Below are positions 1 to 64,000 of a DNA stretch of 64,000 nucleotides, piece after piece (position 1 is the first letter of the stretch; the number at the start of each line of letters is the position of its first letter). The notes beneath the pieces were generated by a model. That model was not told the origin of the DNA. It ran no database searches and worked only from the letters and a program-made list of their open reading frames with translations. Position numbers and translations under genes: made by a program. The stretch spans positions 1 to 64,000 of IMG/VR virus record IMGVR_UViG_3300020469_003050; one strand, 5' to 3'.

Positions 1-192
1 GCACAAGAAGAAGCTGAACGTACATTCGAAGCATTTATGTTGTGGACAAAACGTACATGTCTTGCATTTGGTTTATTTGGTGCAGTAGTTGTTGTAGGTT
101 GTAATAGTGGCGTTGAAACTGGACCTAATGCAACTGGTTCTAAATACAATGGCGAACAGTATAATCCAAGTAATATAAAGGTAGAAAAGTAA
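1..192 (+). CDS. 5'-truncated small membrane protein; weak resemblance to alphaproteobacterial aa3-type cytochrome c oxidase subunit IV
   Basis: Frame 1 is open from base 1 to TAA at 190-192: AQEEAERTFEAFMLWTKRTCLAFGLFGAVVVVGCNSG...VEK; one hydrophobic segment. Confidence 0.5.
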   Translation, partial: AQEEAERTFEAFMLWTKRTCLAFGLFGAVVVVGCNSGVETGPNATGSKYNGEQYNPSNIKVEK

Positions 193-512
193 TGTTAAAA
201 TATGTATTTGTATTTCTACTAATATCAACATCTGCTAATGCTAAGAATTTTATTGTAGAAAAATGTTTTGCAGAATTTGAAAAGTATTCGGATGTTGCTT
301 ATTGTATAGATAGCACTAGAAATGAAAATATAAGAAAAGCAAATGTAGAACAATGGGAGTTTTTGAAGAAGAACCCTCGTTACCGTTTTCCAGGCCAAAG
401 TTTAAACAAGTGTTTTGGTCTTCCAAGAGAATCTAAAATTCATCGTGTAGAATCTACAAATGATAGAACGGTTCTGTATTATAAGAGTTCAATTAAGCCG
501 TGTATACGTTAA
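192..512 (+). CDS. hypothetical secreted protein
   Basis: Signal-peptide-like N-terminus (MLKYVFVFLLISTSANA); 4 Cys; TAATG coupling to the upstream ORF. Confidence 0.7.
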   Translation: MLKYVFVFLLISTSANAKNFIVEKCFAEFEKYSDVAYCIDSTRNENIRKANVEQWEFLKKNPRYRFPGQSLNKCFGLPRESKIHRVESTNDRTVLYYKSSIKPCIR

Positions 513-513
513 G

Positions 514-1059: not shown

Positions 1060-1389
1060 CTATTTTAATTCAAACTGTATGCCAAATACGACACCAGCCC
1101 TCTCCTCATCTTCAACTGTTGGCATAACGAATAAGTTTTTATATCTTAATCTAGCCATTGGTACAACATCATAGTCGTATCCAGTAGCAATGCCAAGGTC
1201 TAATGACAGATCCTCATCAAGACTATATTTATATGCCCCAATAAGACTCCATCGGTCTAAACTATTATAATAAGTTCCTACAATAGTCTTTTCGGTTTCG
1301 CACATTGCATATGGGTGAAGATTATTGTATTTTCCTTCTAATCCCATATGTGCCGAAAGTGCCAAACCTAATACTATACAATTTAACAT
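1060..1389 (-). CDS. small outer-membrane beta-barrel-like (PagP-like) protein
   Basis: SxH...YNNLHP...GTYYNS...GIATGY pattern, alternating beta strands, aromatic residue near the C-terminus. Confidence 0.5.
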   Translation of the reverse strand: MLNCIVLGLALSAHMGLEGKYNNLHPYAMCETEKTIVGTYYNSLDRWSLIGAYKYSLDEDLSLDLGIATGYDYDVVPMARLRYKNLFVMPTVEDEERAGVVFGIQFELK

Positions 1390-4214
1390 TATTCCATCCC
1401 CTCGTATTGCATATCAACCATTTTCTCATGCAATATCTCATTTGCGAGACCGTTTCTTAGGCCTCTTTGGTTTTCAGGTATCTTTTTATCTTTATAGATT
1501 TCTTCATATTGATAAAATTCTACACCTGGTATATAATACTCCCCATATGCTTTAAAACCTGGTACATAATTTATAAGTGCAGTTATTTGGGCTTGTAATG
1601 CCTGTTGTTGTTCTAATGAAACGGCTTTGCCCATAACATCTGCTAACTCTTTCAATTTGTTTTTGATGATTTCTTTCATCTTTTTTAATTTTGCTTTTCT
1701 TTTTTCTTCTTTAGTCATTTTCTTTTTTGTAGATTTATTTGAAGTAGTTTCTTCTTTATCGGAAGATTTTTCATCTTTCTTATCATCTTTCTTTTCTTCT
1801 TTCTTTTCTTTTTTATCTGACTTTTCTTCCTTTTCTTCTTCTTCTTTTTCTTCTACTTCTTCTTCTGACTCTTCCTCACTTTCTTCATTCTCAGATTCAT
1901 CAGTATTTTCCTCAGATTCATTTTCTTCGTCACTACCTTCATCCTCAGTTGATTCTTCTTCTGTATTTTCTTCTTCTGTGGATTCTTCTTCTGTACTTTC
2001 TTCTGTAGTTTCATTTTCTGTACTTTCATTTTCACTTTCTACTTCAATATCTTCTATTGACTCTGACTCACTTTCTTCTGTCTCTACTTCTACTTCCATT
2101 GTATCATCAGATGTATCTTGTGTTGGAATTTCTATATCGATTTCCATTTCTGCTTCAATTTCCATCTCTAGTTCCATCTCAATTTCTAATTCAAGTTGTT
2201 CTGTAACATCTGGAACAGGAACTTCTATTACTTCTGGTTCTACTGGTGTAATATCTGGTATTTCAACTTCTATTTCTGGTACTGTAATAATTTCTACTCC
2301 GGGTATATTACCAGGAATAGTAACTTCTGGTGCCTCAATAATATTATCAACAACTGAATCACCAGTACCTGTACCATCATCAATAATATCATCTATATCT
2401 GTTTCTACTACAGGTGCAACATAACCTGGACACATTTCATCATATTGTGGGTTTTGTTGACATTGTTGATTGAAGTATGCATCTTGATATCCTGTACATT
2501 GAAAGTTATAAAGTGGATCTAAATCACATTGCTGATTAAAATATGCATCAGCATATCCTGTACAACTTTCATCATACAATGGATTTTGCTCACATTGATA
2601 TGTTAAGAAAGCCGCCGCATATCCAGTACATGAACTATCATATAATGGATTAGATTCACATTGAAGTGTTAAATATGCCGCATCATAACCTGTACATTCT
2701 GAATCATATAAAGGATTGGCAGTACATGCCTGATTGAATATATATGTTGCATATGCTTCTGCATAACCTGTACACATTTGATTGAATAGTGTATTTGAAT
2801 CGCATTGTGTTGTCATGTATGAAGTTTTAAAAAATCTATAAGTCTTACCATTGTCTGGTTGAACAGTATTTCCACTTGCATTTTTTGTATATAAGAACAT
2901 ATGAGTTCCAGTTCCACTACCTTGAACCGAAACACTACTGATAGTTCCATAATCATCAGTACAATTCGTACCTGTACATTCCCATTTCCAGCCACCTGCG
3001 TTTATTTCTGCTTGGTTATAATATAATATCCAATAAAGTGTTGGGTCATTTGCTTTAGTTACTTCAACAAAGTCACTGCCTGCTCCTGCAACGTTTGTAC
3101 CATTGCTTGTTAATTCTGTAATTGCACTACTATAACCTGTACATGAACTATCGTAATGTGCATCTAAGCCACATTGTTGTGCTAAGTAGGCCGCGGCATA
3201 ACCCGTACACCCACTATCATAAAGAGGATTAGCAGTACATTGTTGAGTATAGATTGCTTCTGCATATCCCGGACAAGCCGCATCGTGTGTTGCATCTAAA
3301 CTACATTGTTGATTAAAATAAGCAGTAGCATAACCAGGACAACCTGAATCGTATAAAGCATCAGCGGCACAATTTTGGTCATATTGTTGGGCCGCATATG
3401 CAGTAGCATATCCTGGACAACTTGGATCATATAGTGCAGTATCATTACAAGGATTTGCTCTATAAGTAAACCAAGTTTTTATATCTTTTACGATAGGTCC
3501 GTAGTACCCGTCCCAATTACCTTTATCGTAACCATTAATTCTAAAACGAACATCACCTACTGAATTTGGTGTACGTATTGTTCCTACTTTATCTATGTGA
3601 TTGTAAATTTCTATATTGTCTTCGTGTATCTGCCAGACAGTTGTACCTTCTGCGACTTCATTAGTACTGTGGCTATTACTTGAATTCCATTGATACCATG
3701 TATCCATTGTCCAAGTTTTTGTTTCAACTACATTACCACTAGAATCTGTGACTTCTACAACTACAACTAATTCGTCCCAATATGTATCATCGGTGACTTC
3801 ACCTGTTGTAGTGTTTGCTCTATTGCTGATATTGGCACTACAAAAGTTACCAGGTGTATTGAAACAGTGAATATACTTCCATTGATAGTGAACTTTATCT
3901 ATGCTTACGCCTGTGCCTTGTAGTGCTTGATTGATTGCATAAGAAATAGCAAATGTATTTTGGCACTCTCCCCACCTTATAGTACTTCCAGATCCATAAA
4001 CATATGCGGCAGAAGTGCCTGCAGGACAATTACCAAATGGTTGGCCTATTGTACCATCATCTAAATCTAAGGTATTTGGACTAGTAGTTGTTGGGTTAGT
4101 TGGTGCAGTGGTATCTGATGCGAATACTGTGCTACAGAACGAAAGCCAGAACAGCAAGAATACCGCCGATAGTAAGCCCTTCGACCATTCCTTCTTTAGC
4201 AAGTTTTTTCTCAT
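1389..4214 (-). CDS. large secreted Cys-repeat protein with acidic/Lys-rich stalk
   Basis: Signal peptide; 11 CxxxxxYDxxC[PT]GY-type repeats; E/D-rich then K-rich low-complexity region. Confidence 0.8.
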   Translation of the reverse strand: MRKNLLKKEWSKGLLSAVFLLFWLSFCSTVFASDTTAPTNPTTTSPNTLDLDDGTIGQPFGNCPAGTSAAYVYGSGSTIRWGECQNTFAISYAINQALQGTGVSIDKVHYQWKYIHCFNTPGNFCSANISNRANTTTGEVTDDTYWDELVVVVEVTDSSGNVVETKTWTMDTWYQWNSSNSHSTNEVAEGTTVWQIHEDNIEIYNHIDKVGTIRTPNSVGDVRFRINGYDKGNWDGYYGPIVKDIKTWFTYRANPCNDTALYDPSCPGYATAYAAQQYDQNCAADALYDSGCPGYATAYFNQQCSLDATHDAACPGYAEAIYTQQCTANPLYDSGCTGYAAAYLAQQCGLDAHYDSSCTGYSSAITELTSNGTNVAGAGSDFVEVTKANDPTLYWILYYNQAEINAGGWKWECTGTNCTDDYGTISSVSVQGSGTGTHMFLYTKNASGNTVQPDNGKTYRFFKTSYMTTQCDSNTLFNQMCTGYAEAYATYIFNQACTANPLYDSECTGYDAAYLTLQCESNPLYDSSCTGYAAAFLTYQCEQNPLYDESCTGYADAYFNQQCDLDPLYNFQCTGYQDAYFNQQCQQNPQYDEMCPGYVAPVVETDIDDIIDDGTGTGDSVVDNIIEAPEVTIPGNIPGVEIITVPEIEVEIPDITPVEPEVIEVPVPDVTEQLELEIEMELEMEIEAEMEIDIEIPTQDTSDDTMEVEVETEESESESIEDIEVESENESTENETTEESTEEESTEEENTEEESTEDEGSDEENESEENTDESENEESEEESEEEVEEKEEEEKEEKSDKKEKKEEKKDDKKDEKSSDKEETTSNKSTKKKMTKEEKRKAKLKKMKEIIKNKLKELADVMGKAVSLEQQQALQAQITALINYVPGFKAYGEYYIPGVEFYQYEEIYKDKKIPENQRGLRNGLANEILHEKMVDMQYEGME
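2420..3450 (-). repeat. ~22-aa Cys-pair tandem repeats (5 + 6 copies) flanking an inserted domain
   Basis: e.g. CTANPLYDSGCTGY, CESNPLYDSSCTGY, CEQNPLYDESCTGY; boundaries approximate. Confidence 0.85.
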
Positions 4215-4956: not shown

Positions 4957-5034
4957 GGGGGTGCCGTGAAGTTGGAGTTTCACACTGGTCTCCAAAACCA
5001 GTATTAGTAGGTTCGAATCCTATCACCTCTGCCA
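4957..5034 (+). tRNA. tRNA-Trp(CCA)
   Basis: Anticodon arm CTGGT-CTCCAAA-ACCAG, T-loop TTCGAAT, G discriminator, encoded CCA; atypical C at position 8. Confidence 0.85.
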
Positions 5035-9106: not shown

Positions 9107-9335
9107 TAAAGTAGATTTACACGGACTTTTTGTTCATGAAGGTTGGAAACGTTTTCGTAAGTCAACACAAGAGGCATATTTATATGGTCATAAACAAATC
9201 ATCGTTATTGTCGGACATGGAGAAATGTCAAAAGAGTTTGAAAAATGGTGTGAAGCGGATCCTTACGTGAGAGAAACTAGAAGATTAGATAGAAACACAG
9301 GTGCATTCAGAGTAATATTAAAGAAGAAAAAGTAA
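9099..9335 (+). CDS. stand-alone Smr (small MutS-related) domain protein
   Basis: VDLHGL...IIVIVGHG...W...GAFRVILK. Confidence 0.85.
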   Translation: MHNKVDLHGLFVHEGWKRFRKSTQEAYLYGHKQIIVIVGHGEMSKEFEKWCEADPYVRETRRLDRNTGAFRVILKKKK

Positions 9336-13396: not shown

Positions 13397-13873
13397 ATGT
13401 TTTTTTATAGAATCAAAAAATATCTAATAATCGCAGGTATTCTAGCCGCGGTTGGATTTGGATTATTTAAGTATTATGAATATACACAGAATCAAATAAG
13501 AATATATGCCGAAAATGCCGCTAGAGCAGAAATGGCTCAACAAGAGACACAAGCCGCTTTAGAGAAAACAATGAAAGACCTAGAGTTAGTACAAGAAAAA
13601 TTTACTAAGGTTACTGAGCAATTTGCGGCGGCTAATGGTCGTGTAAAAGGCTTAGAAAATAAACTAAAAGAACATGATTTACCTTACTTGGCTGAACAAA
13701 AACCAGGATTAATCGATAAAATAGTTGACAAAGGTACTAAAGATATGTTAAGATGTTTAGAAATAGTAAGTGGTTCACCACTAACCGAGGAAGAAATAAA
13801 TGTTACTAAGAAAAGTAAAGCAAATACCACATGTCCTGATATTGCTAACCCTAACTACGTTCCTATTAACTAG
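13397..13873 (+). CDS. probable inner-membrane spanin (Rz-like)
   Basis: N-terminal TM, periplasmic coiled coil, C-terminal Cys; overlaps a downstream lipoprotein gene. Confidence 0.6.
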   Translation: MFFYRIKKYLIIAGILAAVGFGLFKYYEYTQNQIRIYAENAARAEMAQQETQAALEKTMKDLELVQEKFTKVTEQFAAANGRVKGLENKLKEHDLPYLAEQKPGLIDKIVDKGTKDMLRCLEIVSGSPLTEEEINVTKKSKANTTCPDIANPNYVPIN

Positions 13874-45253: not shown

Positions 45254-45273
45254 TAACATAAAAGGAGAGGAAT

Positions 45274-45468: not shown

Positions 45469-45471
45469 GTA

Positions 45472-45501: not shown

Positions 45502-45527
45502 TTACTCTTAATAATCATTAGATTATT

Positions 45528-52414: not shown

Positions 52415-55400
52415 ATGCGATTGCACGAATTTAAAATAGAAAAGCCCAAACCAGAAGATACTATGGGTATCACTAGAGACAAAATGCCTCAAGTGAAATC
52501 TACAGATTATGATGCATATAAATCTTATCTTAAAAAGAATGGTGTCACATTAAGACCACAAGTAGTACATGCAAAAGATTTAAAACCAGTACAATCAGAA
52601 TTTTCAGACCAAGGCGTTGAAAGACAATTAAACAAGAATAGAGAAAATGATGGACAGAACCCAAAACCTCTACTAGCAAGTAGTGACGATTGGATTATAG
52701 ATGGTCATCATAGATGGTTAGCCGCTTTAAACTCAAATAGAAACGTAAGTATTTTACGTGCAAATGTTGATGTGCATGAACTTTTATCCTTGACTTTAAA
52801 ATTTCCTAGTGTATACTTCAAAGATATCTACACAGAAGAGGAAGAGTCAATGGACGTGATTCAAAAAGCAGAGAAGTTTGCACAAGAGGCACACAAAGAC
52901 CATCAGAGAAAGTACACTGGTGATCCTTATTATGTCCATTTAGATGAAGTTAGAAACATAGTAAAACAAGCAGGCGGTACTGTAGAACAACAAGCGGCCG
53001 CTTTATTACATGATACAGTTGAAGATACAAGTGTTACACCAGTAGATGTAACAAGAGAATTTGGTCCTAAGATTGCTAAACTAGTTGTTGAACTTACTGA
53101 TGTAAGTAAACCAGAAGACGGTAATAGAAAAACACGTAAAGCAATCGATAGAGATAAACTAGCAGGTGTTAGTGCAGAAGCACAAACAGTTAAGTATGCA
53201 GACTTGATAAGCAATGGCAGAGACATAGGTAAAAATGACCCTAAGTTTGCTAAAGTGTATCATGCTGAAAAGGCAGATTTGCTAAGAGTTATGACAAAGG
53301 GTAATCAGAATTTAAGAAAACAAGCTATCGCATTATTACCTGATGAATTAAAATCAGTAGTAGGTGAGGCGTTTGGCAGAGCAAACTTTAACAAGCAATT
53401 AAAAAGAAAAGGCATCGATGTAGATAAGATGCATTCAGATAATGTTAAAGATGCTGAGGCATCTAAGAAAAGAAGTAAAGATGCAGAAGATGATTTAAAA
53501 GCATTTAGAAAAAAGCATGGCATAAAAGAAGAAACACCTTTCGGTTTACTTTCTCGTAAGATGAGTCATGTAATTAATAAAAAAGCATATATGAATATGG
53601 CACAGATGATGCATAAGATACTTACAAGAAAGTATAAAGAAACTAATGGTAAGTTAAGACATTCACTTGCCTATTATGCACAAATGTTAGCAATGCAAAC
53701 AAACAACAAAATAAACTATCGTGAACTTGAAAAAGAATACCTTGATATGTTTGGTAACGCAATGTTTGAAAACTCAGTTAAAGAGTCTTTAAACGAAGAA
53801 GCACTAAATGTTAAATCTATTATTACTCCTGCTATTCGTAAACTAGATAAAGTATTTAAAAAGAATAAACACGAAGTAAGAATTGTTGGTGGTGCAGTAA
53901 GAGATATCGCATTAGGTAAAGAGCCAAAAGATATTGACTTTGCCACAGATGCTACACCAGATGAAATGATTGCTATGCTTGATAAAGAAGGCATAAGACA
54001 TATTCCTACAGGTATAGAACATGGTACAATAACTGCGGTTATTGATGGAGAAGATTTTGAAATAACAACTTTACGTGCAGATACAAATACAGATGGTAGA
54101 CATGCTGATGTAGAATTTGTACGTTCATGGGAAGAAGATGCTAAACGTAGAGATTTAACATATAACGCAATGTCAATGGACATGGACGGTACAGTACATG
54201 ATTACAATGGTGGTATGGACGATTTACAAGATAAAGTAAGTAGGTTCGTAGGGGATCCAGAAGAAAGAATTAAAGAAGATTATTTGCGTATCTTAAGATA
54301 CTTTAGATTTCAATCTAAGTTAGATAGTCCAAAGTGGGACGATACTACATTAAATGCAATCAAAGATAATGCAGACGGTATGACAGGTTTATCTGTTGAA
54401 AGAATTTGGCAAGAAATGGGCAAATTGTTAATGGGTTCAAGTGCCAAAGAAGCACTTGAGTGGATGAACAAGACAGGCGTATCAAGTAAGATTGGACTTG
54501 AAGGTATCAATCCAGCTAAACTAGGTGAGCCTACAGGACCTATTATTGCACTTGCAAGAATGCTAGACAGTAGTGGTATTGCAAGAGATTGGAAGATGAG
54601 CAATTACGATAGAGAAATGTTTGACTTCTTAATCAAGCACAAAGGTGAAAACATAAATTCAAAACAAGCACAAGATATGATTATCAATGGTGCATCACAA
54701 GACCATTTACTTGCATGGGCAAACATGCATGGTAAGAATGATGTATATGATGCAGTACACGGATTTGAACAACCAGACTTCCCAATCAATGGTAAAGACT
54801 TACTAGCAAGAGGTTATGTAGCTGGTCCTAATCTTGGTAAGATGATTGCTGATTTAAAAGATGAGTGGATGAAATCTAACTATAAACTAAGCAAAGAACA
54901 ACTACTAAGCAAAGTTCCAGTTAGAGAAAATGCACTATTCGAAGCGGTTGCTAGATTTATGACAGGACATGGTATTACTTACAAAGGTAAGAAGTATGAT
55001 GAAATGAATGTAGAAGTAGTAGGTGTTGATAATGAAAAGAGACAATATCAAGTAATGATATTTGATCCAGAAGAATTACGTGGTGTAAATGTTATGATGA
55101 GTGCAAGATTTATGCACAGAGGCCCATGGGTTAAGACAAAGATACCTGATTACATGGGAGCAATAGAAAAAGGTTTAGATAAAGATAAGACAGATGAATG
55201 GATAGTTCCTGTTGGACAAGCAATAGCACATGGCGCCAGAATGGCGGCACCTCATGTAGCGAAGTTTCTGAGAAATGACCCTGCACCTAAGATAGCAGGT
55301 GGAGTTACATCAACAGGTGCGGCATATAATTGGGCAAAAAATAAGTACGATAGTTTTAAGAATAAGAAAAGTACAAAGCCAACAACGACAACAGAAGCAG

Positions 55401-56065
55401 AGACATCTACACCAGATGTATATGTTGATATGGACGGTGTGTTAGTTGATTTCTTCAATGAATGGGCTAGACTAGTTGGCGTTAAGTCATACAGAGATAT
55501 ACCAAAGAAAGATATAGGCAAAGCATTAAAGAAGATTGTTAGTACTCCAAACTTCTGGGAAGACTTGCCAACATTAGCAGGTTACAAAGATTTGCTACAA
55601 ACAATTAAGGCTGTAAAAGGCAAATACAAAATATTGAGTTCCCCTCTAGCAAATGATCCTAACGTAGATCCTGGCAAAAGAGAGTGGGTGAGAAAACATT
55701 TAAACTTCTTTAAACCAGAGCAAGTTATCATTGACCATAATAAATCAAAATATGCAAAGAAACAAGACGGTAGTCCGAACTTGTTAATTGATGATTTTGG
55801 TAAGAATGTCGATGCATGGCAATCAGCTGGTGGTATCGCAATTAAACATCACACAACAACTACTGCAAATACAGTACAAGCAATTAAGAAAGTATTCAGT
55901 ATAAAAGATGTTAAAGAAGCGGCTGGCGTAGGTAGAGTTATACCTGGCATAAATACCACAGTTGACGTAGGTCCCAACGAAATTACTAAACAAGCTAAAA
56001 AGTTTGGTAATGATGTAGATAAAGATGGGAAACCTAAGAAGCTACTGCGTACAAAGAAAAAATGA
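52415..56065 (+). CDS. multidomain protein: ParB/Srx-like + HD (Mesh1/SpoT-type) + CCA-adding tRNA nucleotidyltransferase + HAD 5'-nucleotidase-like
   Basis: IIDGHHRW; AH..QRK..PY..H...LLHDTVEDT...VKYAD..SN; VGGAVRD..DIDF, RRDLTYNAM, EDYLRILRYFRF; DMDGVL...LLIDD. Confidence 0.9.
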   Translation: MRLHEFKIEKPKPEDTMGITRDKMPQVKSTDYDAYKSYLKKNGVTLRPQVVHAKDLKPVQSEFSDQGVERQLNKNRENDGQNPKPLLASSDDWIIDGHHRWLAALNSNRNVSILRANVDVHELLSLTLKFPSVYFKDIYTEEEESMDVIQKAEKFAQEAHKDHQRKYTGDPYYVHLDEVRNIVKQAGGTVEQQAAALLHDTVEDTSVTPVDVTREFGPKIAKLVVELTDVSKPEDGNRKTRKAIDRDKLAGVSAEAQTVKYADLISNGRDIGKNDPKFAKVYHAEKADLLRVMTKGNQNLRKQAIALLPDELKSVVGEAFGRANFNKQLKRKGIDVDKMHSDNVKDAEASKKRSKDAEDDLKAFRKKHGIKEETPFGLLSRKMSHVINKKAYMNMAQMMHKILTRKYKETNGKLRHSLAYYAQMLAMQTNNKINYRELEKEYLDMFGNAMFENSVKESLNEEALNVKSIITPAIRKLDKVFKKNKHEVRIVGGAVRDIALGKEPKDIDFATDATPDEMIAMLDKEGIRHIPTGIEHGTITAVIDGEDFEITTLRADTNTDGRHADVEFVRSWEEDAKRRDLTYNAMSMDMDGTVHDYNGGMDDLQDKVSRFVGDPEERIKEDYLRILRYFRFQSKLDSPKWDDTTLNAIKDNADGMTGLSVERIWQEMGKLLMGSSAKEALEWMNKTGVSSKIGLEGINPAKLGEPTGPIIALARMLDSSGIARDWKMSNYDREMFDFLIKHKGENINSKQAQDMIINGASQDHLLAWANMHGKNDVYDAVHGFEQPDFPINGKDLLARGYVAGPNLGKMIADLKDEWMKSNYKLSKEQLLSKVPVRENALFEAVARFMTGHGITYKGKKYDEMNVEVVGVDNEKRQYQVMIFDPEELRGVNVMMSARFMHRGPWVKTKIPDYMGAIEKGLDKDKTDEWIVPVGQAIAHGARMAAPHVAKFLRNDPAPKIAGGVTSTGAAYNWAKNKYDSFKNKKSTKPTTTTEAETSTPDVYVDMDGVLVDFFNEWARLVGVKSYRDIPKKDIGKALKKIVSTPNFWEDLPTLAGYKDLLQTIKAVKGKYKILSSPLANDPNVDPGKREWVRKHLNFFKPEQVIIDHNKSKYAKKQDGSPNLLIDDFGKNVDAWQSAGGIAIKHHTTTTANTVQAIKKVFSIKDVKEAAGVGRVIPGINTTVDVGPNEITKQAKKFGNDVDKDGKPKKLLRTKKK

Positions 56066-57384
56066 ATGAAATAAATCCAAATCTTCATAATTTATATAAT
56101 ACGATGTGTTTCAAAAACTGGAACGACATTATTATATCCTTACCTCAAAGAACTGTTAAGTGGTGTTGTAAAACTCAATACACTAACAAACAAATGGAAG
56201 AACTTACGTTTGATTACAATACACTTACAGAAGATTTCTTATTCAATCACCCTATACTTCAAAAAAGAAAGTACGACTTAAGTGGAGGTACACGTAGTCC
56301 TGATTGCGTAGGTTGTTGGCGAACAGAAGATGCTGGTGGCAGTAGTGTAAGAACTGAATATAATAAGAATTTTGATTATCGTTTAAAAAGACAATATCAA
56401 AAAGCAGGTAATCACCCTAATTTAGCAAAACAGTTCCATAGAGATATGATGGAACATGATAACTTTAAATTCATTGAAATAGAACTAACAAACAAATGTA
56501 ATATGGCATGTGTTTATTGTTGGGGAGGTTCTAGTACTCGTTGGCAGAAAGAATTAGGTCAAAGATTTCCAGATACAGATGATGCAATGTTTGATAAGAC
56601 ACTAGAGATATTAAACGGATATTGGGATAAGAAACTTGTAGGTCAAGGTCATGTTAATTTTAGTTTGCTAGGTGGTGAGCCATTCTTTACTGACCATATG
56701 TTTAGATTTATTGAAAACTTTATGATGAATATTAACGACACACATAGGGAAGGACAGATAGTAGTAATTACAGTTACAACTAATTTAAACTTTCCTAAAA
56801 AGAAATTTGATAAATTTATTGAACTAGTAAATCGAACACCAAATATACGTTATGAAATGCAACTATCGGGTGAAGCATTACATAGACAGAGTGAGTTAAT
56901 TAGGTGGGGATTAGACTTTGCTAAATGGGACGAGAATTTAGATTTATTCTTTGAGAAATCAAAAGAAATAGATAATTTAGTATTGGGATTTGGTTGTGCC
57001 CATAACAGTTTAAGTCTTCCTTATTTTAAAGACTTCTTAGTATATCTTAATGACAAGATAAACAAATATGATTATGATAAGACAATATTAATGCATCAAA
57101 ATTGGGTAGATAATCCAGAGCATTTAGCGATAGATTCATTAGAGCCTCATCATGCAGATACAGTACAAGAACAAATAGAGTATTTTAAGAATATGTCTGG
57201 TAATTTTTATAAGAAACAAAGATATATTGGATTAATGAATACAATGAAAGACTTAGTAGCGAGTGAAGTACCAGAAAAGACTAAGTTACTTGCTCAAAAA
57301 CAGTTTAAAATGCTAGAGGATAGAAGAAAAATCTCATATTCAGAGCATTTCCCTCACTTCAATGAACTAGTAAATTTAAAATAA
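56062..57384 (+). CDS. radical SAM protein with N-terminal Cys cluster
   Basis: CNMACVYC, GGEP, TTN; N-terminal C..WCC..CVGC. Confidence 0.9.
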   Translation: MNEINPNLHNLYNTMCFKNWNDIIISLPQRTVKWCCKTQYTNKQMEELTFDYNTLTEDFLFNHPILQKRKYDLSGGTRSPDCVGCWRTEDAGGSSVRTEYNKNFDYRLKRQYQKAGNHPNLAKQFHRDMMEHDNFKFIEIELTNKCNMACVYCWGGSSTRWQKELGQRFPDTDDAMFDKTLEILNGYWDKKLVGQGHVNFSLLGGEPFFTDHMFRFIENFMMNINDTHREGQIVVITVTTNLNFPKKKFDKFIELVNRTPNIRYEMQLSGEALHRQSELIRWGLDFAKWDENLDLFFEKSKEIDNLVLGFGCAHNSLSLPYFKDFLVYLNDKINKYDYDKTILMHQNWVDNPEHLAIDSLEPHHADTVQEQIEYFKNMSGNFYKKQRYIGLMNTMKDLVASEVPEKTKLLAQKQFKMLEDRRKISYSEHFPHFNELVNLK

Positions 57385-57408: not shown

Positions 57409-57645
57409 ATGAAAATAAACGAATTATTAGGTGAAAATTTTAGTGGTAGTTTCGCTAGTGTGGCATTTCCAATGACACCGGGAACGAAGGCTAAAGATGC
57501 CAGAAAGGCAGTAGATCCTTTTGGGTATCTAACACCTAAGAATAAAAAGAAACAAGAGAACTATAAGATGGGTTTTTCTGCCGATGTAGGTAACTTAGTT
57601 TATAATAAGCCTGTCAAGAGTCCAATGATTAAGAGAGCAAAATAA
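57409..57645 (+). CDS. small putative internal head protein
   Basis: MKINELLGE N-terminus. Confidence 0.65.
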   Translation: MKINELLGENFSGSFASVAFPMTPGTKAKDARKAVDPFGYLTPKNKKKQENYKMGFSADVGNLVYNKPVKSPMIKRAK

Positions 57646-59525
57646 TGAAACTTACACAATTAACCGAGAGTTTTGTAATCAATAACGATGAGTTTGAAGA
57701 TTACTTAAACCGTGGTACGGAACAACTCAAAACAGAATTAGAAGGTGGCAAGAATGCCCGTGATGCAATACATGATATTGCACAGACATTTTCAAGCCAA
57801 CATAATAAATCATACGAAGCATATGAACGTATGTCAGATAGTCTAGCGGCTAGAATGCACACACTAGATTTAGGTGGTGGTGAAAGTCTTCCTGCAATGG
57901 CTCCTGAAGTTCCAGCAATGGATCCTGAAGCACCAAGTGATATGGACATGTCTCCAGAACAACCAGATATGGATGTGGCTCCAGAACAACCAGGTATGGA
58001 TATGGAAACACCAGATGCAGAAGAAATGCCAAACGATGAAGAAATGGCAGACTATGATGCGGTAATGGCGAATAAGCCTGATGATACAGAAGAAAGTATC
58101 GAAGAATCTTCAACTGCTCTTAAAAATAAAGAAGATTATATGGCTAAACGTAAAGCATTACAAGATATTCAGATGGACCCTGACACAAGTAAAAACGAAG
58201 AACTTAAAAAAGAATTAATGCGTAGAAAAGCAGAACTTGAAGACCAAGCAAAAGCAATGGGTATTAAAGAAGGCACTATGATTGGTGGCTTAATGAAATA
58301 TGATGGTCAACCAGAAGAAGAATATTCTGAGGCTGTTGCAAAATATAATGAGTTTATGTCTAAACCTCGTCCAGCGAGTGAAGAAACAAGTGACATGATT
58401 ATGGGATTTGTTTTTGATGATGAACTATTAGATGATATGTACGTTGCACAAGACGAAGGTAACAAAGATGTTAGACCTATGGTTGCTAAGAGAATGGAAG
58501 AACTTGGTCATGCAAATGAATCAGTTTCAGAAGCAGATGAAAAACCATACATTTGTGTACATGCTGATAAAGGCAAACACGAATGTCATGCGACTTCTTC
58601 ATACGGAGCGGCTAAAAAGGCGGCTGAACATTGGGGAATGAAATCAACTGCTGGTATCGATGCAAATTTGGCAGTAGAAGAATCAGCAATGATTGAAGAA
58701 GGTGCAATGGATACTCTAAAGAAAATTGTAGCAGACAAACAAAACATGCCTGTTAAATTTGATGATGGTCAGATGAAAGTAGATTTATTTACTGCATCGG
58801 CTGTTACACAAGTTTATGATAAAGTAAACGATGCTAACAGAGAAAAAATTGACAACATGCTAAAAACTAAAGCTGGTATGCTTAAGATTGCAGACTTTGC
58901 CTTAGGTTCTATGAAAGAAGGCAAACTAGATACTGCTATGAACGTAGCAAAGAAAGTAGGTCAAGTAGCTGGTAAAGTTAAACAAGGCGCTGACATGGCT
59001 AAGAAAGGTATTGATACTGCAAAAGCTATAGGTAAATCTGGTCCTGCTCAAGCGGCTGGTGGAATTATCGGTAAAGTAGCAAAAGCCGTTGGTGCTGGTA
59101 TACAAAATAAGGCATCAGATTTAACTGGTGGACAAATCAAAAAGTCTAAAGTAAAAGTATTCAATGCAGACGATGTAGCAGACAGAATTGTTAACAATTC
59201 GGCTAGAATTGCAATGTCAGAGTACAATGAATTCTACAAAGAACTAGATAAAGCGGCTAAGCAAGGTAAGAAAGCTGGTGACTCTATCTCAGTTGGTGGT
59301 AAGAACATCAAACTAAAATCTAATCCAAAGAAAATGTCAGACCTAACTGACTCAGACTTTGTAAAGATTGATGCACTTGCACAGAAAGTAAATGAATTGG
59401 CTCCATTAGCCCCATTAGCGGGTGCGGCGGCAAGAGCCATTGGTGGAAAAGTTATCAAAAAAGCGATTAAGGCAAGTCCAGGTGCAAAGTTTGTCAGTGC
59501 AATGACAGGCGGAAATAAAGAATAA
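57645..59525 (+). CDS. multi-module putative internal head/core protein
   Basis: MKLTQLTE start; M/P/D/E-rich linker; modules separated by IEE, IKE, VSE, VEE, MKE, MSE, VNE. Confidence 0.65.
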   Translation: MKLTQLTESFVINNDEFEDYLNRGTEQLKTELEGGKNARDAIHDIAQTFSSQHNKSYEAYERMSDSLAARMHTLDLGGGESLPAMAPEVPAMDPEAPSDMDMSPEQPDMDVAPEQPGMDMETPDAEEMPNDEEMADYDAVMANKPDDTEESIEESSTALKNKEDYMAKRKALQDIQMDPDTSKNEELKKELMRRKAELEDQAKAMGIKEGTMIGGLMKYDGQPEEEYSEAVAKYNEFMSKPRPASEETSDMIMGFVFDDELLDDMYVAQDEGNKDVRPMVAKRMEELGHANESVSEADEKPYICVHADKGKHECHATSSYGAAKKAAEHWGMKSTAGIDANLAVEESAMIEEGAMDTLKKIVADKQNMPVKFDDGQMKVDLFTASAVTQVYDKVNDANREKIDNMLKTKAGMLKIADFALGSMKEGKLDTAMNVAKKVGQVAGKVKQGADMAKKGIDTAKAIGKSGPAQAAGGIIGKVAKAVGAGIQNKASDLTGGQIKKSKVKVFNADDVADRIVNNSARIAMSEYNEFYKELDKAAKQGKKAGDSISVGGKNIKLKSNPKKMSDLTDSDFVKIDALAQKVNELAPLAPLAGAAARAIGGKVIKKAIKASPGAKFVSAMTGGNKE

Positions 59526-59882: not shown

Positions 59883-62672
59883 ATGAGTTATGTAGACGCC
59901 TATTACAACAGAGATAAAGACATTGTTCAAGTCATAGAACGTGTCAATGGAAAACGTGTCTATAACGACTTCCCTGCATGGCGTACATTTTATGTCAAAG
60001 ATCCTAGAGGACAACACACTAGTATTCATGGTGACAAAGTACGTGAGATTAAATGCAAACGATTAAAAGATTTACACAAAGAGCGAAGAATAAACTCAGG
60101 TAAATCACTATACGAAAGCGATATCAAACCAGAAGTAAGATGTTTAAGTGAGAACTACAACGGTGTAGATTCTCCAAAGCTACATGTTGCGTTTTTTGAT
60201 ATCGAGGTAGACTTTGATGCAGATAAGGGATTTGCTCCTCCAGAGGATCCCTTTATGCCTATCACTGCAATTACTGTTTATCTACAGTGGTTAGATAAAC
60301 TAGTTACGTTTGCTATCCCTCCTAAGCATATGCAAGAAGGAGAAGGTCTAGAGGAAGCAGAACGAATCTGTAAACAATTCGATGATACATTTTTATATCT
60401 TGACGAAGTAGATATGTTAAATGACTTCATTGCATTAATTGATGATGCAGATGTTGTATCTGGTTGGAACTCAGAAGGTTTTGATATCCCATATACAGTT
60501 AGACGTATTACTCGTATGATGAGTAAATCACATACACGTAAACTTTGTTTGTGGGATTTACTTCCACACGAAAGACGGGTAGTTAAGTATGGTAGAGAAC
60601 AAATCACATATGACTTGTCAGGTCGTATTCACTTAGACTATCTTGAACTTTATCGTAAGTATACATATCATGAAATGCATTCATATTCACTTGATGCTAT
60701 TGGTGAGTATGAACTTGGTGAAAACAAAGTTCCATATGATGGAACTCTTGACCAATTATACAACAGAGATTTTTACAAGTACATTGAATATAACAGACAA
60801 GACGTTGCACTACTAGGCAACTTAGATAAAAAATTACAATTCATTGACTTAGCAAATGAGATTGCACACGACAACACAGTTAATATCAAAACAACTATGG
60901 GTGCAGTTGCAGTTACAGAACAAGCGATTATTAATGAGGCACATCGTAGAGATATGGTCGTGCCTGATAGAAAAGCTAAAGATTGGGGAGAAGATGATAT
61001 CGAACCAACTGATGCAGAACTAGAAGAAGCAGAGAAACAAAAAGCCGCAGGTGCTTTTGTGGCAAATCCAAAGACAGGTATTCAACGATGGGTATCAGGT
61101 ATTGATATCAATTCACTTTATCCTTCAATCATTCGTGCATTGAATATGTCTCCAGAAACTATTGTTGCACAACTTGAGCCAACTCTAACAGAGAAGATGA
61201 TTGGTGATAGAATTGCACATGGTAGACGAAATGGTAGTAAAGGTTTCGGTGCGGCTCAGGCTTGGGAAGATACGTTTAGTGCAGAAGAATTCAGACTAGT
61301 CAATGAAAAAGATAAGACAGAAAAGATTAATCTTAAATTAGAGTCAGGCGAAGTAGCAGACATGACTGGTGCAGAGATACATAACTTAGTATTTCATAGC
61401 GACTTGCAATGGGCTATTACTGCCAATGGCACTGTTCTTAAACAAGACGTACAAGGTATCATTCCTAGTTTATTAGAACGTTGGTATGCTGAACGTAAGA
61501 TACTACAAACGAACAAGAAGAAAGCTATTGAAGAAGGTGATAAAGAAAAGATTGCGTTCTGGGATAAACGACAACTAGTTAAAAAGATTAACTTGAATAG
61601 TTTGTATGGTGCGATTCTAAATCCAGGGTGTCGTTTCTATGATAAACGTATTGGTCAGAGTACAACTCTATCTGGTCGTTGTATCACAAGACATATGGGT
61701 GCTAAAACTAATGAAGTAATTGCTGGTACTTATGACTACAAAGGCGAGTCCATCATCTATGGCGATACAGATAGTATCTATTATTCTATGTATCCTGTTT
61801 ACAAGGAAGACATTGATGAAGGTAAGATTGAATGGACTAGAGAAAAAGTTATTGAACTGTATGATGAGATTGCAAATCAAGTCAATGCAAGTTTCCCTGA
61901 CTTTATGAAAGACTTCTTTAATTCTCCACGTAAGCAAGGTGAAATTATTGCGGCAGGTCGAGAGAACTGTGCAAGTATGGGTATCTTTATTAAGAAGAAA
62001 CGTTATGCAATGCTTATTTTTGATGATGAGGGTGTAAGAAAAGACGTAGATGGTAAACCTGGTAAAGTAAAAGCTATGGGTCTCGACTTGAAACGTAGTG
62101 ATACTCCTGATTATATGCAGAACTTTTTGAGTGATGTTCTTGTTAAAATTTTAACAGACGGAACGGAACAAGACGTAATCGAAATGGTTAAAGAGTTTAA
62201 AAAAGAATTCAGAGCAAAGCCTGGTTGGGAAAAGGGTACTCCTAAACGTGTTAACAATCTTACTATGTATAGAAATAAAGTAAAAAAGATTGCAAAGCAA
62301 CAAGGCAAAGATTTCAAACTAGAAGGCGAAGATAATAAGAAAGATAAAATTCATTTGCCAGGTCATGTCAGTGCGGCTTTGAATTGGAATACATTACGTG
62401 AACTTCATGCAGACAAATACTCTATTGAGATTGTTGATGGTATGAAAACTATTGTATGTAAACTAAAACCTAATGCGTTAAAAATGACAAGTGTTGCATA
62501 TCCAATTGATGAAAAACGTATCCCTGAATGGTTTCAAGAACTTCCTTTTGATGATGAGTTAATGGAAGCAACAATCATTGATAAGAAACTAGATAATCTT
62601 ATTGGTGTTCTTAAGTGGGACCTAAGTGATGCTGATGCATCTGAACAATTTACAAATCTATTTGAGTTTTAA
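59883..62672 (+). CDS. family B DNA polymerase (gp43-like)
   Basis: FFDIE, GWNSEGFD, YNRQD, DINSLYPS, KINLNSLYG, YGDTDS, KKRY. Confidence 0.97.
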   Translation: MSYVDAYYNRDKDIVQVIERVNGKRVYNDFPAWRTFYVKDPRGQHTSIHGDKVREIKCKRLKDLHKERRINSGKSLYESDIKPEVRCLSENYNGVDSPKLHVAFFDIEVDFDADKGFAPPEDPFMPITAITVYLQWLDKLVTFAIPPKHMQEGEGLEEAERICKQFDDTFLYLDEVDMLNDFIALIDDADVVSGWNSEGFDIPYTVRRITRMMSKSHTRKLCLWDLLPHERRVVKYGREQITYDLSGRIHLDYLELYRKYTYHEMHSYSLDAIGEYELGENKVPYDGTLDQLYNRDFYKYIEYNRQDVALLGNLDKKLQFIDLANEIAHDNTVNIKTTMGAVAVTEQAIINEAHRRDMVVPDRKAKDWGEDDIEPTDAELEEAEKQKAAGAFVANPKTGIQRWVSGIDINSLYPSIIRALNMSPETIVAQLEPTLTEKMIGDRIAHGRRNGSKGFGAAQAWEDTFSAEEFRLVNEKDKTEKINLKLESGEVADMTGAEIHNLVFHSDLQWAITANGTVLKQDVQGIIPSLLERWYAERKILQTNKKKAIEEGDKEKIAFWDKRQLVKKINLNSLYGAILNPGCRFYDKRIGQSTTLSGRCITRHMGAKTNEVIAGTYDYKGESIIYGDTDSIYYSMYPVYKEDIDEGKIEWTREKVIELYDEIANQVNASFPDFMKDFFNSPRKQGEIIAAGRENCASMGIFIKKKRYAMLIFDDEGVRKDVDGKPGKVKAMGLDLKRSDTPDYMQNFLSDVLVKILTDGTEQDVIEMVKEFKKEFRAKPGWEKGTPKRVNNLTMYRNKVKKIAKQQGKDFKLEGEDNKKDKIHLPGHVSAALNWNTLRELHADKYSIEIVDGMKTIVCKLKPNALKMTSVAYPIDEKRIPEWFQELPFDDELMEATIIDKKLDNLIGVLKWDLSDADASEQFTNLFEF

Positions 62673-63455
62673 ATGTGTAAAGTAGGAATAGTCGGGTCTA
62701 GTTATAGTGTAGGCAGACATCATAATTATGAAACTAAAGAAAACAATTTAGCATTGCCTTTCGAAGAATGGCTAAATCAATACACAACTAATATAAAGTT
62801 TTTTAATTCTGCTTGTTCAAGCAAAGGTACAGAACTTTACCTAAATAAGATTGTGTACTTAAAAGAAAAACATGACATTGATATTTTATTAATGGAGTTA
62901 GTAAACAATAGGTCACAGTTGAACTTTAAATGTCTTAGTCAACCTTATAAAAGAATAGAAGAAGTAAGTGATATGTCTGTTATCGAAGATGATGTGTATA
63001 GAGATTCAGCATCTATGTATGAATTTATGAGAGCATTAACGCAAGATATGGAAGAAGACTGGTTTGCAAAAACTAAGAAGGCTTTTATGTATTGGAAAGA
63101 AACACAAGAACAAATGGCTGTAAGCAATATGTCATTAGAATTTTGGGGTATGTTAGATGTATATCAAGCAATCAAACTATGTAAACTATTGAATATAAAA
63201 GTTGTAACATGGCATAAGTCTTGGGACTTTTTTGTTCATCCAGGCTTTAAATCAATGTTGGGTGATTCACTGTATGTAGATTTTAATGGTAAGAATGCAC
63301 ACGATTATTACGCAGAAAAGTATGGTGAAGAAAAAATACTTTGTGATGAAACACACTTTAATGACTTTGCCAATGAAGAAATGGTAAGAGACTTTATTGC
63401 ACCTGTATTAGAAAGAGCAAAAAAGATTGTTAATGTTAACAGGATGTCAAGGTAA
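62673..63455 (+). CDS. hypothetical protein, possible SGNH-hydrolase-like
   Basis: GSSYS near the N-terminus, DxxH (DETH) near the C-terminus. Confidence 0.5.
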   Translation: MCKVGIVGSSYSVGRHHNYETKENNLALPFEEWLNQYTTNIKFFNSACSSKGTELYLNKIVYLKEKHDIDILLMELVNNRSQLNFKCLSQPYKRIEEVSDMSVIEDDVYRDSASMYEFMRALTQDMEEDWFAKTKKAFMYWKETQEQMAVSNMSLEFWGMLDVYQAIKLCKLLNIKVVTWHKSWDFFVHPGFKSMLGDSLYVDFNGKNAHDYYAEKYGEEKILCDETHFNDFANEEMVRDFIAPVLERAKKIVNVNRMSR

Positions 63456-64000
63456 TGTCATACACTGAACTAATAAATCGTAGAGCAACTAATGAGTCTT
63501 CTGATGAATGTTACACTCCAGAAGACCAAGTTATGCCTTTACTCAAATACTTGGATAAGGAGAAAACTTATTATGAAGCGACTAGTGAAAGAAGTGGTAG
63601 CATTGTGTCGGGATTTCGAAAATTCGGTTATTCTATTGTGCCTTCTGGCTCTAGGGATTTCTTTGATTGTACACGGAGTGATGTCTTTGATGGCATTATA
63701 ACAAATCCACCGTATAGTAAGAAAGACCAGTTTTTAGAACACTGCTATTCTTTAGAAAAACCCTTTGCATTATTACTTCCTGTTACAAGTTTTCAGGGTG
63801 CGAAGCGAGGGAAGATGTTTATGGACAAGGGAATGTCTGCACTTGTGTATAACTATAGGATAGATTTTACTGGAAAAGGATCACCTACTTTTGGGAATGC
63901 TTGGTTTATATGGGGTTTTATGCCTCCTAATCAAATACATTGGGTAGATAATCCAGTAGCAGGAAAAGTTAAAAAGAGTATTGACATTGGTATTGATTAG
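63455..64000 (+). CDS. small N6-adenine methyltransferase-like protein
   Basis: DECYTP, DFF, IITNPPYS (motif IV), ALLLP; TAG stop at the window end. Confidence 0.75.
   Translation: MSYTELINRRATNESSDECYTPEDQVMPLLKYLDKEKTYYEATSERSGSIVSGFRKFGYSIVPSGSRDFFDCTRSDVFDGIITNPPYSKKDQFLEHCYSLEKPFALLLPVTSFQGAKRGKMFMDKGMSALVYNYRIDFTGKGSPTFGNAWFIWGFMPPNQIHWVDNPVAGKVKKSIDIGID

Follow-up and report, generated by a model that had tools for sequence, protein, structure and literature searches.

Purging of restriction sites with a GG/CC exemption in the genome of a marine jumbo phage

Avoidance of restriction sites is an established anti-restriction strategy of phages (PMC6286503). Recognition sites of Type II systems are strongly under-represented relative to compositional expectation, they are removed by synonymous substitutions, and the pattern depends on lineage. 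Classic cases include the Staphylococcus phages that lack GATC. Protection by methylation of short motifs is found in large viruses such as the chloroviruses, whose M.CviPI and M.CviPII recognize GC and CCD, respectively, and marine myovirus-like genomes frequently carry m4C at short CC/GG-containing motifs, including RGCY, CCWGG, and GGWCC (PMC8919816). The Bacillus phages SPR, phi3T, and rho11s encode multispecific cytosine methyltransferases. Among the host systems, the pentamer GCWGC is the recognition sequence of TseI, ApeKI, and BbvI-type restriction-modification systems, which occur in Archaea, Thermus, Bacteroidota, and Chloroflexi.

Here we analyzed a stretch of 64,000 nucleotides (the window), which comprises bases 1–64000 of the complete 342,607-bp genome of an uncultured marine jumbo myovirus of the T4 superfamily (IMG/VR record IMGVR_UViG_3300020469_003050). 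The initial annotation had proposed, from inspection by eye, that GCWGC is avoided throughout the window so that Ala-Ala pairs are forced into GCG or GCC codons, that AAGCTT and WGATCW are scarce, and that a host restriction system recognizing GCWGC is responsible, giving a host fingerprint. The observation holds and is stronger than first described. The interpretation is only partly supported.

Absence of GCWGC and other sites

Exhaustive counting revealed no GCAGC, GCTGC, AAGCTT, or WGATCW in the window, which contains 79 GCGGC and 26 GCCGC. GCWGC is absent from the whole genome as well. To determine the expected number, a per-gene synonymous-codon shuffle, a kind of null proposed in the initial annotation, was performed with 100 replicates, keeping every protein and the codon usage of each gene. 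GCWGC is present 0 times against 80.1±4.3 expected in the window (minimum 69) and 0 times against 312±8 in the genome (minimum 290), and the two strands (GCAGC and GCTGC) are purged equally. AAGCTT is 0 against 13.9 in the window and 82 in the genome, and WGATCW is 0 against 64 and 365. In contrast, GCSGC is enriched as compensation (411 against 124), whereas the control GAATTC is unremarkable (122 against 126).

The clearing is achieved almost entirely by synonymous choice, in all three reading frames. When the next codon is not Ala, the genome uses GCA 3712, GCT 1702, GCC 437, and GCG 346 times, so that GCA and GCT make up 87% of these codons. In the 370 Ala-Ala pairs, the first codon is GCG 248, GCC 122, GCA 0, and GCT 0 times (76, 23, 0, and 0 in the window). 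After xGC only AGT, TCN, or TGT occur, and in xxG-[Gln/Leu]-Cxx only CAA and non-CTG Leu codons occur. All nine Ala-Ala examples given in the initial annotation read GCGGC or GCCGC. One correction is needed, as the GATC rule is HGATCD (0 against 525±19) rather than WGATCW. All 295 GATC in the genome are GGATC or GATCC.

GCWGC is therefore not a single diagnostic signal but one of about 25 purged motifs. These are GATC, GCGC, CGCG, GCWGC, CGWCG, GAGCT, GACGC, CTGAAG, CTCTTC, AAGCTT, TCTAGA, CAATTG, CTGCAG, CAGCTG, GWGCWC, GCATGC, GCTAGC, GACGTC, CGTACG, CGTCTC, CACGAG, and others. Most match restriction specificities: in addition to TseI and ApeKI, they correspond to HindIII, XbaI, MfeI, PstI, PvuII, Hpy99I, HgaI, Eco57I, EarI, HgiAI, BsmBI, and so on, and GATC and CGCG are methylated motifs in marine prokaryotes (PMC8919816). 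The features of the window are as follows.

1–64000 (no strand): whole window, without GCWGC, AAGCTT, or exposed GATC, GCGC, CGCG, CGWCG, CTGAAG, CAATTG, CTGCAG, CAGCTG, or GWGCWC (see below for exposed and overlapped copies).
2611–2619 (minus): Ala-Ala example within the ORF 1389–4214 (minus), reading GCCGCCGCA on the plus strand, which is of the GCGGC type on the coding strand.
13625–13633 (plus): Ala run written GCG-GCG-GCT, where GCA or GCT in the first two codons would create GCWGC.
29244–29249 (no strand): one of six surviving TCTAGA copies in the genome (copies in the window at 29244, 46340, and 60347); this purge is incomplete (6/108).
45178–45253 (plus): tRNA-Ala gene with one of only three exposed GAGCT copies in the genome (at 45186), probably retained because of RNA constraint.
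59883–62672 (plus): family B DNA polymerase (PolB), used as the marker to find relatives.
62673–63455 (plus): P0001, a 260-residue protein with a predicted SGNH/GDSL hydrolase fold, inserted between PolB and P0002.
63455–64000 (plus): P0002, a 181-residue DNA-methyltransferase-like protein with a TNPPYS motif.

Survival of sites that overlap GG/CC

For nearly all of the purged motifs, a copy survives only if its end base belongs to a GG/CC dinucleotide, more precisely to the first two C of a C run (the last two G of a G run on the other strand). Such overlapped copies are tolerated at roughly the expected frequency. Pooled over 24 motifs, exposed copies are 28 against 1878 expected, and overlapped copies are 776 against 1087. 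In the window, exposed copies against expectation (overlapped copies in parentheses) are 0/65 for GCWGC (0/15), 0/94 for GATC (55/66), 0/16 for GCGC (25/27), 0/14 for CGCG (7/11), 0/18 for CGWCG (8/10), 0/24 for CTGAAG (6/15), 0/21 for CAATTG (4/10), and 0/14 for AAGCTT. Flank tables show GCGC only as GGCGC or GCGCC and CGCG only as CCGCG or CGCGG. All 21 CAATTG, 16 CTGCAG, 16 CAGCTG, 31 CGWCG, 11 GTGCAC, and 6 CGTACG survivors have a flank that forms GG/CC. GCWGC is the exception, because it is purged even when overlapped (0/75). Rescue is partial for some other motifs (CAATTG 0.40 and GAGCT 0.19), and it is also absent for GCTAGC and GACGTC, where numbers are small. Neither the exemption nor the exceptional behavior of GCWGC had been recognized in the initial annotation.

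Motifs that contain GG/CC are themselves not avoided. Among 896 hexamers with GG/CC, only the two that contain GCWGC have an observed/expected ratio below 0.1, whereas 33 of 1140 hexamers without GG/CC do. The position of the dinucleotide is also important. Sites starting with C are 173/265 when preceded by exactly one C, but 0/30 when preceded by CC, and sites merely adjacent to CC or GG are 3/57 and 9/51. If a mark is responsible, protection therefore needs the marked base inside the site.

To examine whether the rule is an artefact of the method, the same analysis was applied to Thermus phage phiYS40 and SUP05 phage Lau218. Both purge their own motifs with no GG/CC rescue, so the rule is not an artefact of the method.

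Lineages and candidate genes

The polymerase (phrog_262, E 5e-193; PF00136) is 48% identical to that of Sinorhizobium phage Phosso and 42–45% identical to those of Atu_ph07 and GAP32-type phages, and it identified 543 relatives in IMG/VR. A megablast search of a tail-fibre gene against GenBank phages gave no match. Comparison of clades A, B, and C shows that the exemption is a family trait, whereas the target list depends on lineage. In clade B, GCWGC is exposed 0/125 and overlapped 37/47, GATC is 0/378 and 0/134, and AGCT is 0/395. Clade C does not avoid GCWGC. The clades also differ in CAATTG and CTGAAG, but all keep AAGCTT at or near zero (a single copy in clade C2). Such switching of avoidance between related lineages is what selection by varying host restriction systems predicts. 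However, phages with 74–78% identical DNA polymerase already have a different motif list, so that as a host fingerprint the list is real but changes quickly and is not specific to any taxon. Attempts to identify the host gave nothing usable: the symporter has no close bacterial relative, RpiB is at most 49% identical to proteins of mixed phyla, no DsrC was found, and the survey of marine jumbo phages in PMC9123017 gives no host for this kind of phage.

P0002 is the only recognizable DNA-methyltransferase-like gene found in the genome (phrog_799 "DNA methyltransferase", E 2e-30; weak PF07669 hit). It is predicted to have a gamma-class amino-methyltransferase core with no target-recognition domain. 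The structural model has a pLDDT of 84, and Foldseek matches it to HsdM, M.TaqI, PacII, and TrmM, the best single match being a tRNA methyltransferase. It is conserved at 64–90% identity directly after PolB in clades A, B, and C, and it is a candidate, unproven source of a protective mark. Its fold is typical of adenine-N6 or tRNA enzymes, and adenine methylation cannot explain the rescue of GGCGC or CCGCG, which contain no A. In addition, two phages with P0002 homologues (47% and 37% identity) lack the rule, and a link between this family and the rule is not supported by Lau218 or phiYS40.

P0001 occurs only in the lineage that purges GCWGC completely, is absent from clades B and C, and evolves fast. 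It has no Pfam, PHROG, or NCBIfam hit, but contains an invariant GSS...G...N...DxxH signature. The model (pLDDT 93) matches TesA and acetylesterases with Foldseek, which led us to reject P0001 as a nuclease or specificity subunit.

Other modification pathways were searched for in the genome. Profile searches gave no C5, Dam, N4/N6, or HsdM-type methyltransferase, with no hits to PF00145, PF02086, or PF02384, and the only PF01555 match, at 97 kb, was below threshold and lies in a radical-SAM gene. For 7-deazaguanine (DpdA/TGT), no PF01702 hit was found. No dCMP-hydroxymethylase pathway for hmC or glucosyl-hmC was seen, as the single thymidylate-synthase homologue scores 338 bits as a canonical ThyA and sits next to DHFR. 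The searches for Tet/JBP and for MT-A70 (PF05063) gave no hits but are uninformative, because their controls also found nothing (none of 14 control genomes for MT-A70). Regular-expression screens for methyltransferase motifs found only P0002 and one other small ORF (313476–314012). A 626-residue protein with an LDLGGG string (57645–59525) has no Pfam, PHROG, PDB, or Atlas match.

Interpretation and comparison with known systems

We consider it most likely (probability about 0.6) that the phage avoids the restriction sites of its host population and that its DNA in addition carries a modification directed at GG/CC. The depletion, its synonymous nature, the exemption, and its variation among clades are shown by the sequence counts, whereas selection by host restriction systems is inferred from these statistics and from the comparison of lineages, and the modified base, its presence in virion DNA, the restriction enzymes, and the host are inferred or hypothetical. 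In this view, phage DNA would be marked, by an enzyme of the phage or of the host, on the first two base pairs of a C run (context DCC/GGH), and the mark would block most restriction enzymes when it lies inside their site, so that purging is needed only where the mark cannot reach. In the lineage of the window, the GCWGC-specific nuclease would not be blocked by a mark on the outer base pair, so that every GCWGC had to go, whereas in a sister lineage the mark would protect GCWGC but not GATC. Such enzyme-dependent sensitivity is plausible, because different GCWGC systems protect different cytosines, the second cytosine for M.ApeKI (PMC8557920) and position 2 in Prevotella intermedia (PMC5608340). 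No enzyme that marks both C of DCC is known to us. A more specific possibility, which is tentative and slightly less likely than not, is that this cosmopolitan family carries a previously undescribed modification of these cytosines or their paired guanines, blocking well over a dozen specificities and made by an enzyme not recognizable as a cytosine or guanine modifier, possibly P0002. A phosphorothioate at CpsC/GpsG was considered because the rule centers on the C-C step, but was set aside by reasoning alone, since most of the enzymes concerned cut inside the site and not at the flank linkage.

Several alternatives appear unlikely. The exemption could reflect flank-sensitive or longer recognition by host enzymes, such as HGATCD, rather than a modification, and the lack of an identified modification enzyme and the flank effects on cleavage rate shown by restriction enzymes are compatible with this. 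However, more than 15 unrelated specificities, palindromic and asymmetric and of 4 to 6 bp, would all need the same rule, including the detail of the first two C of a run, and no motif containing GG/CC would have to be a target. Moreover, GATC and GCWGC swap between clades A and B, and phiYS40 and Lau218 show no such flank rule. It is equally unlikely that the purge is driven mainly by modification-dependent (Type IV) nucleases, against which sites marked by host methyltransferases would be a liability in the next host. The motif list fits methyltransferase specificities as well as endonuclease specificities, GATC and CGCG are the commonest methylated motifs in marine prokaryote MAGs (PMC8919816), and orphan GCWGC methyltransferases exist. 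Nevertheless, this reading does not explain the exemption without again invoking a blocking mark, and it needs both a methylating host and a Type IV host for each of about 25 motifs, so that classical avoidance is simpler (PMC6286503).

A GCWGC-specific nuclease made by the phage itself, for example to degrade host DNA, would explain the lack of rescue of GCWGC in the lineage that carries P0001 next to the methyltransferase, but is very unlikely. P0001 is predicted to fold as an esterase with the Ser-Gly-Asn-His signature, clade B purges all exposed GCWGC without P0001, and no restriction-endonuclease-like gene was recognized among the minority of the roughly 415 ORFs that were scanned. A by-product of composition, codon bias, dipeptide content, or mutation bias is effectively refuted, although the genome is AT-rich (35.6% GC) and CpG-containing words are generally low. 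Besides the codon shuffle and the three-fold enrichment of GCSGC, a maximal-order Markov model expects 203 GCWGC, and relatives with the same GC content and 76–78% identical polymerase carry 31–56 GCWGC per 13–23-kb locus.

Compared with restriction-site avoidance described earlier, the scale is larger, with about 25 motifs driven to zero or near zero in 343 kb, which implies that pelagic hosts expose their phages to a very broad and fast-changing set of restriction systems. The avoidance is also conditional, which to our knowledge has not been described. It lets the specificity of an inferred modification be read from genome statistics without methylome data, and predicts a mark at DCC/GGH that blocks Sau3AI-, HhaI-, BstUI-, PstI-, PvuII-, and MfeI-type enzymes. 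The swap of rescued motifs between sister lineages shows how one can infer which variant of an isospecific enzyme a phage population faces. If the mark exists and comes from P0002, it would define a new class of broad-spectrum anti-restriction modification and would be a useful reagent.

The avoided pentamer is exactly the recognition sequence of the TseI, ApeKI, and BbvI-type systems, but their distribution does not point to one host taxon. As in the short-motif methylation of large viruses, a very frequent, short C/G-rich context would be marked and would shield many different restriction sites at once. The inferred context is DCC/GGH with both positions protective, which differs from CCD with the first C methylated. 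The CCD model was rejected, because GATCCN is rescued for every N including C (22/39), and sites starting with C are not rescued when preceded by CC although they contain a CCD. The enzymes of the Bacillus phages recognize complete sites (GGCC, CCGG, CCWGG, GCNGC, and GAGCTC) and belong to the C5 family, which is absent here, but in both cases one phage function would give protection from several host restriction systems that share CC/GG-containing sites.

Genome and gene content

The window is bases 1-64000 of a virus record from IMG/VR. The record is a single contig of 342,607 bp with direct terminal repeats, and it is rated 100% complete by CheckV. The GC content is 35.6%. The large ORFs encode tail-fibre and head-decoration proteins, a ClpB-like ATPase and PhoH, several radical-SAM proteins, a CCA-adding-enzyme fusion and a family B DNA polymerase. 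The polymerase is 48% identical to that of Sinorhizobium phage Phosso, and 42-45% identical to that of Atu_ph07 and of the GAP32/CBB-type jumbo myoviruses. IMG/VR holds 543 contigs that encode a relative of the polymerase, of which the best 80 were retrieved. Judging by the IMG sample numbers, these appear to come from marine water-column metagenomes. The genome is therefore that of an uncultured, probably widespread and marine, T4-superfamily jumbo phage with no known host.

The features of the window and of its neighborhood that bear on the analysis, or that were observed alongside it, are as follows.

4957-5034, 36800-36874, 37121-37204 and 45096-45604: six tRNA genes (Trp, Thr, Leu, Gly, Ala, Asp) in the first 64 kb.
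9335-10687 (+): a radical-SAM protein.
45638-47125 (+): a phage-encoded sodium:solute symporter (PF00474, E 9e-19), beside the tRNA genes at 45096-45604.
52415-56065 (+): a 1216-aa fusion protein that combines an HD (RelA/SpoT-type HD_4) phosphohydrolase, a CCA-adding/poly(A)-polymerase-family nucleotidyltransferase and an NT5C 5'-deoxynucleotidase domain.
56062-57384 (+): a further radical-SAM protein, just upstream of the polymerase module, conserved in clades A, B and C3 of the relatives described below but absent from C1 and C2.
57645-59525 (+): a 626-aa protein directly upstream of the polymerase, with no match in Pfam, PHROGs, PDB sequences or the ESM Atlas; only its N-terminal part is conserved in clades B and C.
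62673-63455 (+): P0001, a hydrolase with a predicted SGNH/GDSL fold, between the polymerase and the small methyltransferase-like gene.
63455-64000: P0002, a 181-aa DNA-methyltransferase-like protein.
92172-101793 of the whole genome (8172-17793 of the extracted stretch L083), outside the window: a gene cluster of DHFR, ThyA and RpiB, then on the minus strand two Asp/Arg beta-hydroxylase-like proteins, an aminotransferase-like protein, three radical-SAM enzymes (two with SPASM domains) and a 533-aa unknown. It looks like a peptide- or small-molecule-modification cassette.

Avoidance of GCWGC and other motifs

The initial annotation had reported, from inspection by eye, that GCWGC appeared to be absent from the window, that Ala-Ala pairs were consequently written with GCG or GCC, and that AAGCTT and WGATCW also looked scarce. 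Exhaustive counting confirms this observation. The window contains no GCAGC, GCTGC, AAGCTT or WGATCW, but it has 105 GCSGC, and the whole genome also has no GCWGC. To obtain an expectation, 415 ORFs covering 93.5% of the genome were called, and synonymous codons were shuffled within each gene among positions encoding the same amino acid, so that every protein and the codon usage of each gene were kept. In 100 shuffles, GCWGC averaged 312±8 in the genome (minimum 290) and 80±4 in the window (minimum 69). AAGCTT averaged 82 and WGATCW averaged 365, both against 0 observed. GCSGC is enriched, with 411 observed against 124 expected, whereas control palindromes such as GAATTC (122 against 126) are unremarkable. 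A maximal-order Markov model gives an expectation of 203 for GCWGC.

The codon-level description is also correct. Ala codons that are not followed by Ala are GCA (60%), GCT (27%), GCC (7%) and GCG (6%), but in all 370 Ala-Ala pairs, 99 of which are in the window, the first codon is GCG or GCC. The other two reading frames are cleared as well. After a codon ending in GC, Ser and Cys are never encoded by AGC or TGC, and between xxG and Cxx, Gln is always CAA and Leu is never CTG.

GCWGC is one of many motifs that have been purged. When all 4- to 7-mers were ranked against the shuffle, a long list of words was found at or near zero, which includes GATC, GCGC, CGCG, GCWGC, CGWCG, GAGCT, GACGC, CTGAAG, CTCTTC, AAGCTT, TCTAGA, CAATTG, CTGCAG, CAGCTG, GAGCAC/GTGCAC (that is, GWGCWC), GCAAGC, CACAGC, CACGAG, CACGTC, CGTCTC, GCATGC, GCTAGC, GACGTC and CGTACG. 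Most of these are recognition sequences of familiar restriction-enzyme prototypes. GCWGC is documented as the specificity of TseI and ApeKI. Many other palindromes are not avoided, for example GAATTC, CATATG, GATATC, ATGCAT, TGTACA, GTAC, CATG and CTAG. The pattern is therefore a discrete list of targets and not a general aversion to palindromes.

Exemption of copies that overlap GG or CC

Flank tables revealed an unexpected rule. The 295 surviving GATC are all GGATC or GATCC (HGATCD is 0 against 525 expected), the 91 GCGC are all GGCGC or GCGCC, and the 31 CGCG are all CCGCG or CGCGG. The tolerated forms occur at about the expected frequency. The same holds for longer motifs, because every surviving copy of CAATTG (21 of 21), CTGCAG (16 of 16), CAGCTG (16 of 16), CGWCG (31 of 31), GTGCAC (11 of 11) and CGTACG (6 of 6) has a flank that turns its end base into GG or CC.

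A copy was defined as exposed if none of its bases belongs to a GG or CC dinucleotide. On this definition, the observed/expected counts of exposed and overlapped copies are 0/523 and 295/380 for GATC, 0/81 and 91/105 for GCGC, 0/67 and 31/45 for CGCG, 0/94 and 31/41 for CGWCG, 0/121 and 42/78 for CTGAAG, 0/92 and 21/53 for CAATTG, 0/45 and 16/31 for CTGCAG, and 0/35 and 16/22 for CAGCTG. Summed over the 24 motifs other than GCWGC, there are 28 exposed copies against 1878 expected and 776 overlapped copies against 1087 expected. The few exposed survivors in the window comprise one GAGCT at 45186, inside the tRNA-Ala gene at 45178-45253, and copies at 29244, 46340, 60347, 22001, 16548, 26808 and 4335; the three TCTAGA, two GACGC, one GAGCT and one CTCTTC show no clustering.

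Consistent with this rule, no motif that contains GG or CC is avoided. Of 896 such hexamers with an expectation of at least 12, only GCTGCC and GCAGCC fall below an observed/expected ratio of 0.1, and they do so because they contain GCWGC. Of the 1140 hexamers without GG or CC, 33 fall below 0.1.

The rule has a finer structure. A site starting with C is rescued when it is preceded by exactly one C (173/265) but never when it is preceded by CC (0/30). A site ending in C is rescued by a following C whatever comes next, as seen for GATCCN (A, 115/154; C, 22/39; G, 22/31; T, 99/124). A site that merely abuts CC or GG without sharing a base is not rescued (3/57 and 9/51). The protected positions are therefore the first two C of a C run, or equivalently the last two G of a G run, and protection requires the protected base pair to lie inside the recognition site. 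This excludes a CCD-type (M.CviPII-like) pattern.

GCWGC is the exception in this genome, as it is absent even when it is flanked to give GG or CC (0/75 overlapped). The initial annotation had thus picked the one motif for which avoidance is unconditional, which is why the absence looked so clean by eye.

Relatives, candidate sources of the inferred mark and comparison with other systems

The loci around the polymerase fall into three groups. Clade A (polymerase at least 88% identical) repeats the profile of the window, with GCWGC at 0/73 exposed and 0/24 overlapped and GATC at 0/177 and 90/106. Clade B (about 74-76% identical; loci L025-L043, L049-L051 and L058) is a sister lineage with a different purge list. 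It also has no exposed GCWGC (0/125) but tolerates overlapped copies (37/47), and it has no GATC at all (0/378 exposed and 0/134 overlapped; 0/512 together) and no AGCT at all (0/395), whereas CAATTG and CTGAAG are not avoided. Clade C (76-78% identical) carries GCWGC, and most of it GCGC, at or near expected levels, with GATC only partly depleted. It still lacks AAGCTT (one copy in one sub-clade) and GACGTC almost entirely, and where it does avoid a site the rule shows again (CTGCAG 1/11 exposed against 16/14 overlapped in C3). The exemption rule is thus a trait of the family, while the target list turns over between lineages. This is the behavior expected if the targets are set by changing host restriction repertoires and the exemption is set by something constant.

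To identify what could make the inferred mark, six-frame family searches of the genome were performed. These found no C5 methyltransferase, no Dam, no HsdM-type enzyme, no PF01555 enzyme (the one weak hit is a radical-SAM protein) and no DpdA/TGT. Searches for MT-A70 and Tet/JBP also returned nothing, but as their controls gave no hit in any control genome, these two results say nothing about absence. The single thymidylate-synthase homologue is a canonical ThyA next to DHFR, so there is no sign of an hmC pathway.

The only DNA-methyltransferase-like gene is P0002, which has invariant DECYTP and TNPPYS motifs and matches phrog_799 (DNA methyltransferase) at E 2e-30. Its model (pLDDT 84) resembles the catalytic cores of HsdM, M.TaqI, PacII and the tRNA enzyme TrmM, and has no target-recognition domain. 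P0002 is conserved at 64-90% identity immediately downstream of the polymerase in clades A, B and C, and its roughly 290 homologues are unnamed metagenomic proteins. It is a reasonable candidate because it is the one conserved methyltransferase of the family, but the link is unproven. The fold class is typical of adenine-N6 or RNA enzymes, adenine methylation cannot rescue GGCGC or CCGCG, and the phages Lau218 and phiYS40, which carry homologues (47% and 37% identity), lack the rule. A methyltransferase shared by all hosts would be an equally possible source.

P0001 lies between the polymerase and P0002 only in clade A, and it evolves fast (53-100% identity), diverging much faster than its neighbors. 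We tested whether it could be a GCWGC nuclease. This reading was rejected, as P0001 has the invariant Ser-Gly-Asn-Asp/His blocks and the predicted fold of SGNH/GDSL esterases.

The search for the host did not lead to an identification. The sodium:solute symporter has no close bacterial relative in the GTDB representative genomes, RpiB is at most 49% identical to proteins from mixed phyla, and no DsrC is present in the genome. A published survey of marine jumbo phages gives no host for this type. GCWGC systems, which the initial annotation had taken to give a host fingerprint, are taxonomically scattered. The motif list is a fingerprint of the defense repertoire the phage has met, but on present data it does not point to a taxon.

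Taken together, the interpretation put forward in the initial annotation is supported in part, in that selection by restriction is well supported but is an incomplete account. The more interesting result is that the avoidance is conditional. The depletion of the motifs, the exemption and the variation of the target list among clades are established by counting, whereas the cause has been inferred: the conditional avoidance implies a GG/CC-directed protective feature of the phage DNA, most simply a base modification at DCC/GGH, and this rests on statistics alone.

The same analysis was applied to two unrelated phages that also purge sites strongly, and neither shows a GG/CC rescue. The SUP05 podophage Lau218 (L085) purges GTAC (0/38 exposed, 0/36 overlapped) and CTAG (1/69, 0/24) and partly avoids CCGG and GGACC. 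Thermus phage phiYS40 (L166-L167) purges GAGAC (0/49, 0/20), CACTG (0/27, 0/17), GTCAC and CGCG, with ACGT strongly reduced. The rule is therefore not produced by the method.

The swap in behavior of GCWGC and GATC between clades may be viewed in the light of isospecific enzymes, which differ in which modified positions block them. For GCWGC, M.ApeKI methylates the second cytosine, whereas the Prevotella intermedia enzyme methylates position 2, so systems exist whose protection depends on different C positions. By inference, a mark on the outer base pair would then block one type (clade B hosts) and not the other (clade A hosts).
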